Sequence record: NC_048046.1
Length of the DNA stretch: 64,000 bases
Reading direction: 5' to 3' (one strand)
A model generated the notes under the pieces. The model ran no database searches, was not told where the DNA came from, and saw only the letters and a list, made by a program, of their open reading frames with translations. Shown one piece after another: positions 30,491-33,754 of this stretch. The translations under genes and the position numbers were made by a program. Each line of letters begins with the position of its first letter. The stretch's first letter is position 1.

Positions 30491-30793
30491 ATGTTTGCCG
30501 AAGACCACGACGACGTTCACGTCTCCGAGCACGCCGACTTCCGGGTCCGCAAGCGGATGGGCATCCCGCGCAAGGCCGTAGACCGCATGGTCACCAAGGC
30601 CCTCGCCGACGGCGCCAGTCACTCCGCCTTCAGCGGCTCGATGAAGCGCTACCTGGACCACGTCTACCTGAAGGAAGGCCGGGCCAACAACATGAAGGTC
30701 CACGCCGGCTACCTCTTCCTGTTCGCCGGCTCGACCCTGATCACCTGCTGGCCGCTGCCGCCCAAGTACCGAAATACGAAGCCCCGCGCATGA
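30491..30793 (+). CDS. Basic hypothetical protein, possible BECR/RelE-like nuclease fold (100 aa)
   Basis: S.HA..R..KR.GI motif and C-terminal TLITCW strand; AGGAGG RBS. Confidence 0.6.
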   Translation: MFAEDHDDVHVSEHADFRVRKRMGIPRKAVDRMVTKALADGASHSAFSGSMKRYLDHVYLKEGRANNMKVHAGYLFLFAGSTLITCWPLPPKYRNTKPRA

Positions 30794-31218
30794 CGACGAT
30801 CGCTTATCGAGATGGCATCCTGGCTGCTGACAGTCTGGTGACGAATGGCGGCGCCCGCGCCTCGCTGACCGCACGGAAGATTCGCCGCATCGGCAAGGCG
30901 CTGGTCGCCGGCTGTGGCTACATCGGCGAACTGGAAGCGTTCGTCGATTGGGTCGCCGGCGGCATGAAGGAGAAGGACCCGCTGCGCGGCGGCGAGACCT
31001 CCTGCATGCTGATCGTCAAGGGCCAGCCGCCCGTGATGTTCGGCTCGACCGGCCCCTGGCCCTTCACGTCCGATTACATGGCGATGGGCTCGGGCGAGGA
31101 CTTCGCCTTCGGCGCCATGCACGCAGGCGCGACCGCCGAGCAGGCCGTCGCCGCCGCGATCGCTCACGACGTCTATTCCGGCGGCCCGATCATCACCCTG
31201 AAGCTGCGAGATTCCTAA
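30790..31218 (+). CDS. HslV/proteasome-beta-like Ntn hydrolase (142 aa)
   Basis: N-terminal MTTIAYRDGILAADS nucleophile motif, AMGSG, and D.YSGG motifs. Confidence 0.75.
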   Translation: MTTIAYRDGILAADSLVTNGGARASLTARKIRRIGKALVAGCGYIGELEAFVDWVAGGMKEKDPLRGGETSCMLIVKGQPPVMFGSTGPWPFTSDYMAMGSGEDFAFGAMHAGATAEQAVAAAIAHDVYSGGPIITLKLRDS

Positions 31219-31463: not shown

Positions 31464-31921
31464 AGGTCCAATTTCTGACCGAGCAGGAACACCGGCTACG
31501 CCTGCGCGCGGCCCATCCTCGCTGGAAGACCCAGACCAAGACGCACGATCCCGAGAACGGCATCGAAGGCAACTGCACGCAGGCGGCATTCGCCTCGCTG
31601 CTGGGCTTGGAACTCGACGAGGTTCCGGACTTCAACACCCTGCACCAGGGAGACGAGAACGCCGGCGCCTTCTGGCATCACCTTCACACGTGGTGCCGTG
31701 AGCAGGGCTGGCATCTCCAGATGCGCCCGGCCAATCAAGTGCCGAATGTCCTTTACCTCGCGGACGGCCCGTCACCGCGCGGTGTCGGTCATTTCGTCAT
31801 CATGAAGGAAGGTGAAATCTACCACGATCCGCATCCTTCCCGCGCCGGCATCCTGGAGGTCAAGCACACCTGGATGCTGCTGCCGGTCGACCCGGCCGAA
31901 ATGAAGAAGGTCACCCGATGA
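31460..31921 (+). CDS. Papain-like (C39-type) peptidase-fold protein (153 aa)
   Basis: GNCTQAAFASLLG (Cys), GHFVI (His) and HDP (Asp) in the expected order. Confidence 0.6.
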   Translation: MKVQFLTEQEHRLRLRAAHPRWKTQTKTHDPENGIEGNCTQAAFASLLGLELDEVPDFNTLHQGDENAGAFWHHLHTWCREQGWHLQMRPANQVPNVLYLADGPSPRGVGHFVIMKEGEIYHDPHPSRAGILEVKHTWMLLPVDPAEMKKVTR

Positions 31922-32067
31922 ACGAAGACCTGCTGTTCTACAGCCTGTACGGCGCGACGATCGTTTTCATCGCGGTTCTACGGTTCGAGGCCTGGAAGTG
32001 GTGGAACCGCCCTAGGCGTGGTGCCCGCCTGACCGAAGATCAAGTCGATTCAGTCTTGGCGCGCTAG
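31918..32067 (+). CDS. Small membrane protein (49 aa)
   Basis: Read manually; one TM helix followed by a basic tail. Confidence 0.6.
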   Translation: MNEDLLFYSLYGATIVFIAVLRFEAWKWWNRPRRGARLTEDQVDSVLAR

Positions 32068-32069
32068 CG

Positions 32070-32405
32070 AGCGGGAAGATCGAGTCAATCGCGCATTGAC
32101 CAATCTTCCCGCCGCCGTCGGAGCCCGAAGGCTCCGAGATCGATGGGGTCAGGCTTCTCACCATTCCTGACCCTTCGCGTGTGCGCGAGGCTGCGCTGGG
32201 CACCATCGACAATGCCCACCCGTCATTCTTTCTACGTCGGGCGACCCCGACGGAGGCTTGTGCGAGTCCTCAATCCGCCCGTGTCCCGTGGGCTGACGTC
32301 GCATTTCATCTTCTAACGCCCCGGCTTGCGAGAGGGCGGGTGAAGTAGACGACGTGATCACCCCGTGCCCCGTTAGAAACGGGGGCGGAAGTGCGACGTC
32401 CACGG
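32070..32405. ncRNA. Candidate ~335-nt highly structured RNA
   Basis: At least 8 hairpins, a long-range helix and a possible pseudoknot; minus-strand TTGACA-N17-CTATAG promoter at 32411-32439; no credible ORF. Confidence 0.55.
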
Positions 32406-32471
32406 ACCGTCTATAGCCAAGCCCGCAGACGCCTGTCAACTCCTGGGTTCAAAATTTAATGACCACGCGGC

Positions 32472-32507
32472 GCCAGGATTATTGACACCCGGCGCCAGCA
32501 TGGTTAA
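32472..32507 (+). promoter_or_regulatory. GCCAG-N5-TTGACA promoter with CtrA half-site (ATGGTTAA)
   Basis: TTGACA at 32482-32487; reverse-strand TTAACCAT at 32500-32507. Confidence 0.6.
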
Positions 32508-32563
32508 CAGTTCCGTCGTTCCAGGCGCCAGCCATATTGGCGCCGCCCCGACGGAGCGAAGGC

Positions 32564-33754
32564 GTGACCGCCAACATCGACGATTATATCGAACAGCAGG
32601 AAGCGGCGATCGAGGCGCAGTTCGCCGGCCGCGACTTGCAGTTCGAGCACAACCGCGTCTGGATGACTTCCGGACAACTGGAGCGCGCCGCGCACCGCCT
32701 GACCATGAAGACCCGCGTTGGCGGCGCCACCCGCGACGAGAAGGCGCGCGGCATCTCCGATTACGGCACGGACGCCGCATGCGTCGCCGATGCGTACCTG
32801 AAGATCACGCGCGATGACCGCGACGCGATGAACCTGATCCGCCGCGCGGCGGGCAATATTGATGCACTCGAAAAGCGTCTGGAAGATCAGCTTGGACAGC
32901 TTGAAACCCGCCCGCGCGTCGACCTGACCAAGCTGAAGATGCTGCCGACGATCCAACTCGCGTCCGGCCGCTACTTCGACTTCGTCAACCCGGACAGCAC
33001 GCCGCTGGAGATCGACGATCTCGCCGCCGGCCTGTCGCGCATCTGCCGCTATACCGGTCAACTCGCGATCGACGAGGACGAGGTCTACACCGTCGCCCAG
33101 CACAGCGTCCTGGCGAGCGAGAACTGCGGCCCTGACTGCGACCCGTACGAAGCCCTGCTTCACGATCGGGCCGAGAGCGTGATGAACGACATGGCCTCGC
33201 CGCTGAAGCAGCTTCTCCCCGACTACAAGGAGATCGAGGATCGCGTCGAGACGTCGACCGGCCAATACTACGGCGTCGAGCATCCGATGTCCGCCGGCTG
33301 CAAGGCGATCGACATCCGCATGCTCGCCACCGAGAAGCGCGATCTGATGCCGCACGTCGAGGGCGACACGGCCTGGGCCGGCATCGAGAACATCGAGCCG
33401 TTGCCGTTCAAGATCACGCCGTGGTCGCCGTCGGAAGCGCGTCATCGTTTCCTGCACCGCTTCTACTGGCTGACTGAGGGTCGCCTGCCCAAGCCTGAAG
33501 ACCGCTACGCTCGCCCGCACGAGAACGCGCCGAAGGACTATATCGAGGCACTGGAAAAGGCGTGGGGCTTCTATCCTTTCCGTGCGCCGCATGAGCGTCG
33601 TGGTTCTTTCACCATCACGCCTGATCGCTGGCCCTGGCAGAGCTATCAGGGCCTACCGACTTTGCCTCCGGATTACGGACTGAAGGAACAGGTCCGCCCG
33701 ATCGGCGACACTCAGGATGTCGGCTCTGTCCTTCGTCCGGATGCTGCCGCATGA
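32564..33754 (+). CDS. HD-domain (YfbR-like) nucleotide phosphohydrolase with N-terminal extension (about 396 aa)
   Basis: L....LSRICRY.G, TVAQHSVL, ALLHD.AE...NDM.SPLK and D..ML.TEKRDL motifs. Confidence 0.8.
   Translation: MTANIDDYIEQQEAAIEAQFAGRDLQFEHNRVWMTSGQLERAAHRLTMKTRVGGATRDEKARGISDYGTDAACVADAYLKITRDDRDAMNLIRRAAGNIDALEKRLEDQLGQLETRPRVDLTKLKMLPTIQLASGRYFDFVNPDSTPLEIDDLAAGLSRICRYTGQLAIDEDEVYTVAQHSVLASENCGPDCDPYEALLHDRAESVMNDMASPLKQLLPDYKEIEDRVETSTGQYYGVEHPMSAGCKAIDIRMLATEKRDLMPHVEGDTAWAGIENIEPLPFKITPWSPSEARHRFLHRFYWLTEGRLPKPEDRYARPHENAPKDYIEALEKAWGFYPFRAPHERRGSFTITPDRWPWQSYQGLPTLPPDYGLKEQVRPIGDTQDVGSVLRPDAAA

Follow-up and report, generated by a model that had tools for sequence, protein, structure and literature searches.

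Few structured RNAs of phages have been characterised, and several of them are mechanistically rich, among them the phi29 pRNA, the ToxI-type antitoxin RNAs, ROOL and GOLLD. GOLLD, ROOL and OLE are large 'ornate' RNAs, bacterial or phage-associated, that are catalogued as Rfam families and have been studied by cryo-electron microscopy, and their function is unknown (PMC12286853). Here we analyse a 64,000-nucleotide stretch of sequence record NC_048046.1 (the window), which coincides letter for letter with bases 1-64000 of the 308-kb genome of Caulobacter phage CcrPW (genus Colossusvirus, host C. vibrioides CB15, that is C. crescentus CB15), and within it a 496-bp unannotated gap between gp063, which encodes a 49-aa protein and ends in a stop codon at 32065-32067, and gp064, an HD-superfamily hydrolase gene with a GTG start at 32564. 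No coding sequence (CDS) is annotated between the two, and the genes around the gap all lie on the plus strand. We propose that the minus strand of this gap carries a real, independently transcribed gene for a structured RNA with a predicted transcript of ~340 nt, a reading to which we give a probability of about 0.72; we infer production of the RNA, its ends and its role from the DNA sequence of the phage and its relatives.

Three groups of relatives served for comparison. Among deposited phages CcrColossus is the only close relative; a search with the HD protein retrieved the Logan contigs L017 (HD protein 84% identical), L018 (69%) and L019-L023 (60%, with identical gaps), and three public sequencing runs supplied contigs, here X1, X3 and X4, that are 90-95% like CcrPW. 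The distance from the -10 box of the predicted promoter to the gp063 stop is 354, 349, 350, 346 and 345 nt in five lineages, and this interval is free of open reading frames (ORFs) throughout; half of the RNA sequence cannot be aligned across the lineages, yet helices and motifs recur at the same positions. The predicted gene and its parts, from the promoter onwards, are as follows.

32411-32439, minus strand: RNA-gene promoter, with a -35 box TTGACA at 32439-32434, a 17-nt spacer and a -10 box CTATAG at 32416-32411.
32069-32404, minus strand: predicted non-coding RNA of ~335-340 nt, its presumed start 6-8 nt past the -10 box and its presumed end after the terminal hairpin.
32345-32403, minus strand: 5' domain, with P1 (32394-32403/32345-32354), P2 (32386-32393/32359-32365) and P3 (32378-32384/32368-32374).
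32334-32344, minus strand: motif UUCACCCGCCC, directly after P1, the 3' half of which opens hairpin Hx.
32317-32338, minus strand: hairpin Hx (CGCCC / GGGCG), paired in CcrPW and L017.
32235-32293, minus strand: middle hairpins M1 (32277-32293), M2 (32253-32271) and M3 (32235-32252), all paired in CcrPW and L017.
32197-32218, minus strand: hairpin Ha, with the conserved loop UGUCGAU (loop at 32204-32211).
32175-32188, minus strand: hairpin Hb (CGCG-CACA-CGCG plus a U-A pair), paired in CcrPW and L017.
32146-32173, minus strand: hairpin Hc, with the conserved loop motif GGUGA (loop at 32154-32165).
32140-32145, minus strand: linker CAUCGA, candidate pseudoknot partner of the Ha loop (32204-32209).
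32118-32137, minus strand: hairpin Hd, with a c(UUCG)g tetraloop.
32071-32112, minus strand: terminal hairpin He, with a perfect 10-bp outer stem and an inner stem, adjoining the gp063 stop; presumed 3' end or terminator.

An earlier first-pass annotation, made from the letters of the window alone, had described the region as an ORF-free, densely structured RNA candidate, and this description is borne out by folding energies, by compensatory changes in diverged relatives and by the absence of a conserved ORF. The minus-strand RNA (32064-32404) folds at -167.7 kcal/mol compared to -139.0 ± 5.1 kcal/mol for dinucleotide-shuffled sequences (z = -5.6), with none of 100 shuffles as good, and the z-scores of the orthologues are -5.6 (CcrPW), -3.1, -3.9, -3.6 and -1.7 (L019). 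The plus strand (32060-32450) also folds better than shuffles, less strongly (z = -3.3). All the consecutive hairpins that had been listed at the outset, namely He, Hd, Hc, Hb, Ha, M3 and M2, are present, as is the c(UUCG)g loop read on the minus strand.

The argument for a conserved fold is carried by its base pairs. On a plain MAFFT alignment of CcrPW and L017 we scored 94 curated pairs (P1-P3, Hx, M1-M3, Ha-He and the contact between the Ha loop and the linker) and found that 98.4% of the pair cells are paired; 24 pairs vary, and 21 of these stay paired (10 through compensatory and 11 through one-sided changes) while 3 are broken. None of 500 shuffles performed as well, and slid partners yielded 32-49% pairing with 0-1 compensatory pairs. 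For the 3' domain in four sequences, 94.8% of cells are paired, with compensatory changes in 13 of 32 pairs (none of 500 shuffles as good; 35-52% with slid partners), and L018 compared to L019 keeps 73 pairs 100% paired, 8 of them compensatory, against 33-51% when partners are slid. The 5' domain is 97% paired across CcrPW, L017 and CcrColossus versus 34-46% for slid partners, with two compensatory pairs (one G-C to A-U, the other C-G to U-G to U-A); P1 also holds four switches between G-U and G-C. Moreover, a covariance model built solely from the 3' domains of CcrPW and L017 found the syntenic element of L019 at its exact coordinates (23 bits, E = 4e-4), and the next iteration of the model found that of L018 (51 bits). 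The RNAalifold consensus energy of CcrPW and L017 is -123 kcal/mol at 71% identity in a control scan, and -137 kcal/mol with the alignment made by the tool itself (71-76% identity), while control windows of at most 80% identity all lie above the RNA region, at -65 to -119 kcal/mol. Projecting the single-sequence minimum free energy (MFE) fold of CcrPW onto L017 gave modest enrichment only (8 compensatory and 26 broken pairs), because an MFE fold of 350 nt holds wrong long-range pairs. Conservation of structure at homologous loci, which had been suggested as a check, is thus seen in the CcrPW/L017 pair, in the L018/L019 pair and in the four-sequence 3' domain, and these comparisons indicate that the fold is kept through compensatory changes while the sequence diverges.

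Individual parts of the RNA differ in what they keep. The 5' domain, the first ~60 nt, forms in isolation in all five orthologues, and its closing helix ends right before UCACCCG, a motif that is invariant in all five at positions 71-76. This closing helix, P1, bears on the long-range helix proposed in the first-pass annotation (32287-32308 with 32388-32405): complementarity between 32295-32307 and 32388-32400 does exist in CcrPW and L017, but it competes with P1, which is better supported, by three sequences and by an analogous closing helix in the other of the two subfamilies, so that the long-range helix is probably to be replaced by the local P1. Hx has a counterpart in CcrColossus at the same place (CGUCCUG / CAGGACG, where a C-to-U change is matched by G-to-A, as judged by eye), and in X1, X3 and X4 a change at 32338 gives a U-G pair. 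M2 and M3 each show one compensatory pair plus wobble switches between CcrPW and L017; the middle stretch cannot be aligned with CcrColossus, L018 or L019, where other hairpins stand in its place, and a different small hairpin likewise takes the place of Hb in these three. In Ha, the loop UG(U/A)CGAU recurs in all five orthologues (positions 202-221), and all five stem pairs vary yet are 100% paired in four sequences. GGUGA in the loop of Hc is invariant in the five orthologues (positions 246-259), and five of the eight Hc stem pairs are compensatory in four sequences, as are four of the eight in Hd, a UUCG-type hairpin at positions 278-289 whose loop is UUCG in CcrPW, L017 and CcrColossus and UUAAGU in L018 and L019. 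A long perfect terminal hairpin is found in every lineage, each time with a different stem sequence, and He differs by five compensatory pairs between CcrPW and L017. In X1 and X4, He and the 3' end of gp063 (32004-32111) are replaced by 51 and 103 unrelated letters, next to 300 nt that are ~98% identical.

Two long-distance contacts within the RNA are conceivable. The pseudoknot suggested by the first-pass annotation, between TCGATG(G) at 32140-32146 and the loop at 32203-32209, retains its complementarity, its six pairs between the Ha loop and the linker being 100% paired in four sequences, and we keep it as tentative, with a single covarying pair (G-C, C-G, U-G). The UCACC of the invariant motif is also complementary to the GGUGA loop of Hc in all five orthologues, both motifs being invariant, and forms a second candidate contact.

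A doubt about the strand, raised earlier on the ground that one wobble favoured plus, is resolved in favour of minus. Some 20 G-U pair cells of the minus strand (11 of 116 in the 3' domain, 8 of 72 in the 5' domain) would turn into A-C mismatches if plus were the transcribed strand. Moreover, of the five substitutions listed for the RNA body in X1, X3 and X4, four preserve or strengthen pairing on the minus strand: those at 32214, 32338 and 32347 give or resolve a minus-strand G-U, and that at 32212 turns U-G into C-G. Together with the direction of the promoter, these G-U cells and substitutions assign the element to the minus strand. As to coding capacity, the indels that separate CcrPW from L017 measure 1, 1, 2, 1 and 1 nt and are not multiples of three; no frame is common to CcrPW, L017 and CcrColossus, and the open frames vary from phage to phage. 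A single minus-strand frame, at the 5' end, is shared; it has ~80 codons in CcrPW and 45 in CcrColossus and shows 5 replacement versus 2 silent codon changes, and a Pfam search with the 93-aa minus-strand ORF returned nothing.

The minus-strand TTGACA-N17-CTATAG promoter, described from the outset as standing back-to-back with the promoter of the HD operon, is exact, its -35 box and that of the HD-operon promoter lying 42 bp apart, and it turned out to be one member of a class. The CcrPW genome contains 33 exact GTTGACAG sites versus ~7 expected from base composition, and the -35 region of the RNA promoter (GAGTTGACAGG at 32442-32432, minus strand) is one of the 33, with the (G)TTGACAG that typifies the class; its CTATAG, 16 nt after TTGACAG, was counted as a class -10 box. 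The class follows the pattern (A/G)GAGTTGACAG(A/C/G)CG, with CTAnnn 15 nt after TTGACAG in most copies, and most copies also have a fixed leader (GACGAU, 5-8 nt, GGAGG) with a ribosome-binding site (RBS) and ATG 57-60 nt downstream. Each of the 12 copies between 183 and 232 kb precedes an annotated CDS of the same orientation by 56-83 nt. Copies within the window stand at 32440 (minus) and 1072 (minus), and a further one just outside it, at 64313 (minus). We regard the promoter class as real and as driving ~30 phage protein genes, mostly of unknown function; several copies have no ORF behind them and may have other RNAs as their products. Both boxes of the RNA promoter are unchanged in seven relatives (CcrColossus, L017, L018, L019, X1, X3 and X4). 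In X1, X3 and X4 the spacer between the boxes carries three substitutions and a compensating +1/-1 indel pair that keeps the spacing, and in L018 and L019 the promoter reads TTGACAG-N15-GCTATAG. Since boxes and spacing are held while the spacer drifts, as in working promoters, we regard this promoter as real.

The relatives also show how the locus evolves. In X1, X3 and X4, 32111-32420 is 97-98% identical to CcrPW (5-9 changes per 310 nt, including the five substitutions above), the next 100 bp, comprising the promoter spacer and the space between the promoters, hold ~20 substitutions and eight indels, and the coding flank has 13 changes per 115 nt. CcrColossus is ~50% identical to CcrPW over 32068-32340 and 97-100% identical over 32360-32640, from which it follows that the gap consists of one replaced and one near-identical half. 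The identity switches from ~50% to ~98% within ~30 bp near 32340, inside the RNA gene. This looks like a recombination joint at which the 3' two-thirds of the RNA would have been exchanged while the 5' domain and both promoters were retained.

Beyond these lineages the element was not encountered. HD relatives at 54-65% HD identity (the metagenomic contigs L025-L032 and L043, Brevundimonas phages, phiCbK and CcrRogue) show no large gap immediately in front of the HD gene; in Papperlapapp and phiCbK the gap ahead of the HD gene, or ahead of a small gene overlapping it, is only 60-92 nt, and CcrRogue has an unexamined 232-nt gap one gene upstream. The shorter HD relatives L033 and L034 likewise lack a large gap before the HD gene, L034 having an unexamined 426-nt gap one gene upstream. 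Pattern scans for further members retrieved CcrColossus only among viral contigs and none in two metagenome scans and one scan of genome contigs. Within the CcrPW genome, BLAST found only short pieces of the promoter as further copies, and the covariance model R1 indicated a single copy. Run against four complete genomes (CcrColossus, phiCbK, CcrRogue and Brevundimonas phage Papperlapapp), R1 gave only noise below 19 bits, a weak negative because R1 also misses the true CcrColossus orthologue. The lack of a large gap before the HD gene in the 54-65% relatives confines the element to a narrow clade, and by these searches the RNA is restricted to Colossusvirus-like Caulobacter phages.

The first-pass annotation had found no match to a known RNA by eye, and covariance models agree. 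At gathering scores, no Rfam 15 family matched anywhere in the window; relaxed to E up to 10, the search of 31900-32600 gave one chance microRNA match of 15 bits, and the orthologous loci L002, L017, L018 and L019, searched at E up to 5, gave nothing in the RNA region. No GOLLD or ROOL model matched, and ARAGORN reported no tRNA or tmRNA gene in the 64-kb window. We found no paper on a non-coding RNA of these phages, and the searched passages of the phiCbK-like phage genome papers mention no non-coding RNA genes other than tRNAs. Judged by these searches the RNA is outside every catalogued family and would form a new family of a known general kind.

Several observations weigh against an RNA gene and temper the probability given above. 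The covariation evidence comes from five lineages in two subfamilies, too few for formal (R-scape-type) statistics, and it is favoured by the procedure, the structures having been derived from the sequences on which they were scored and alignment A11 having been fitted to the model. The RNAalifold count of compensatory pairs is ordinary, control coding windows of similar divergence reaching 8-12. The 3' domain of CcrColossus escapes models R1 and R2, its helices having been matched by eye, the middle third cannot be aligned between the subfamilies, and the L019 sequence folds only marginally better than its shuffles (z = -1.7). A substitution at 32149, common to X1 and X3, breaks an Hc pair. 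Neither of the two long-distance contacts has a duplex energy better than that of random windows; the UCGA core of the Ha loop/linker duplex is moreover self-complementary, and the UCACC/GGUGA contact is without covariation. The spacing from the -35 box to CTA is 1 nt longer than the class mode, and a scan of both strands over 31800-32700 found no T-run after any hairpin, so that the RNA lacks a canonical terminator; in CcrColossus all nine annotated terminators end in TTT(T).

Outside the RNA, one further feature shares the gap.

32469-32545, plus strand: HD-operon promoter, a neighbour of the RNA gene, with TTGACA at 32482-32487, TGGTTAACA at 32501-32509 and three GGCGCCAG boxes.

The three GGCGCCAG boxes around this promoter look operator-like, and the last lies within an inverted repeat. 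The 40-nt core of the promoter is 100% identical in L018 and L019, whose HD proteins are only 60-69% identical, and a second near-identical copy of the promoter region stands 100 kb away (genome 132067-132105, minus strand). Genes of nucleotide metabolism, a DHH phosphoesterase gene and an RNase H gene lie within 7 kb of the RNA locus. Just upstream, gp060 (30790-31218) is annotated as an HslV/proteasome-like peptidase, has a weak Pfam match and is kept in all relatives. L019-L023 have an extra ~390 nt (~1908-2520), apparently non-coding, between their gp062 and gp063 homologues, in some copies of which a 55-aa ORF is called by one gene finder. Short identical matches at 1233-1246 of the window and 290967-290980 of the genome, separated by 289,734 bp, are consistent with a direct terminal repeat of ~18.4 kb in the CcrPW record as deposited.

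Four other explanations of the locus have to be weighed. The hairpins could mark an operon boundary in cis, insulating the converging gp038-gp063 operon from the divergent promoter pair or stopping transcription in both directions, and the minus-strand transcript would then be a functionless by-product. The region indeed sits exactly between two operons, the terminal hairpin adjoins the gp063 stop in every lineage and is swapped freely between relatives, and no other terminator ends the upstream operon. However, the annotated CcrColossus terminators all carry a T-run that the hairpins here lack, and a boundary element leaves unexplained the constant length of 345-354 nt, the invariant loops at fixed positions, the conserved promoter facing inwards and the way in which 32111-32420 stays 97-98% identical in X1, X3 and X4 between drifting flanks; we consider this explanation unlikely. 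A reading of the same stretch as a plus-strand element, either a structured 3' untranslated region (UTR) that guards the gp063-operon mRNA against 3' exonucleases or a long HD-operon leader, draws on the facts that Watson-Crick hairpins form on both strands, that the plus-strand fold beats shuffles (z = -3.3 and -2.9) and that the upstream operon has no terminator before the region. It would turn ~10% of the conserved pair cells into A-C mismatches, the conserved promoter faces the other way, and the element cannot be the leader of the HD operon because the HD promoter lies downstream of it, all of which makes a plus-strand element very improbable.

The promoter might instead serve a replication origin, making a structured primer or R-loop RNA downstream of which DNA synthesis starts. 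ColE1 RNA II and the phage T4 origin transcripts are RNAs of this kind, and a strong promoter, a long folded non-coding transcript and the nucleotide-metabolism, DHH phosphoesterase and RNase H genes within 7 kb would suit an origin. Cumulative GC skew shows no turn near 32 kb (skew being a weak guide in phages), there are no iterons, no DnaA-box array and no AT-rich unwinding stretch of more than 15 bp, the GGCGCCAG boxes beyond the promoter pair being the only repeats, and the compensatory changes, including those to G-U, point to a folded free RNA rather than an RNA-DNA hybrid, so that an origin strikes us as a distinctly poor fit, if a somewhat better one than a plus-strand element. ORFs of 44-96 codons can be drawn on both strands, as would be expected if the gap held the remains of a decayed gene or an overlooked small protein gene; with no shared frame, with indels out of triplets, with more replacement than silent changes and with the 93-aa ORF blank in Pfam, this is the explanation that we find hardest of all to credit.

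An independently transcribed RNA gene on the minus strand thus remains our preferred reading, and it suggests the following course of events. Host RNA polymerase would start at the sigma-70/sigma-73-type TTGACA-N17-CTATAG promoter (32439-32411) and produce, in this order, the P1-closed 5' domain, UCACCCG and Hx, the variable middle hairpins, the 3' domain of Ha, Hb, Hc and Hd, and He at the gp063 stop. Two complementarities, that of the Ha loop with the AUCGA linker and that of UCACC with the GGUGA loop, could compact the RNA. Since the stems and the middle third vary whereas the 5' domain and a few motifs of the loops and linkers do not, these fixed motifs are expected to be contacts with a partner, and the invariant loop motifs could be sites at which a protein or another RNA is bound. 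A trans-acting folded RNA of early to middle infection, serving as scaffold or decoy, is a possible but tentative proposal for its role. More doubtful is the idea that it is the founding member of a new class of large pseudoknotted phage RNAs that are active in their own right and serve giant Caulobacter phages in host take-over; such a class could act as a ribozyme, form a self-assembling particle like ROOL and GOLLD, disarm host defence or retarget a host enzyme.

The CcrPW RNA is directly testable because the phage grows in the laboratory and infects a model bacterium. Its promoter, fold and natural variants are defined: the half-replaced CcrColossus allele maps the variable parts (the stems, the middle third and the terminal hairpin), and natural variants map the fixed ones (UCACCCG, UGUCGAU, GGUGA and the 5' domain). 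If the RNA does bind a host or phage protein, it could reveal a new route of take-over or anti-defence; should the region prove no more than an operon boundary, a promoter class and an unusual gene boundary free of terminators are documented in these phages all the same.

Set beside known systems, the promoter resembles those of the Caulobacter housekeeping sigma factor, sigma-73, whose published consensus is TTGACGS ... GCTANAWC: the phage TTGACAG, followed 15 nt on by GCTATAGA, fits both halves, while the spacing in the RNA promoter lies at or just past the long end of the published range. Compared to the phage's own class, the RNA promoter differs in driving an RNA gene, without the leader and RBS. 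Intrinsic terminators and repetitive extragenic palindromic (REP)-like arrays share with the locus GC-rich hairpins placed right after a stop codon and between converging units. The locus differs from them, and from the CcrColossus terminators, in having no T-run on either strand, and hairpin arrays usually have no conserved loop motifs, no fixed total length and no dedicated promoter.

Among RNAs that act on partners, 6S RNA and other RNA decoys come close to the mechanism that we favour, namely an abundant, stable RNA made from a sigma-70 promoter that binds a protein. Whereas 6S RNA consists of one long, imperfect duplex interrupted by a central bubble, the CcrPW RNA would be a string of ~12 short helices, and it has no Rfam 6S match. 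The phi29 pRNA is, like the RNA proposed here, phage-encoded, promoter-driven and structured, and it acts in trans, as we propose for the CcrPW RNA; loop-loop complementarity is central to its function. The CcrPW RNA is twice as long and gave no covariance match to pRNA, presumably one of the Rfam families, at E up to 10; the two phages belong to different families with different packaging systems, and nothing ties the CcrPW RNA to packaging. ROOL and GOLLD are roughly 580-800 nt long and usually sit beside tRNA genes in phages or prophages. The CcrPW RNA, at ~340 nt, without sequence or structure match to GOLLD, ROOL or OLE, away from tRNA genes and limited to one narrow clade, is distinct from these three; it resembles them as a long, multi-hairpin, pseudoknot-prone and phage-carried non-coding RNA with invariant loops and covarying stems, in which the part-palindromic UCGA motifs of loop and linker could in principle mediate RNA-RNA contacts.

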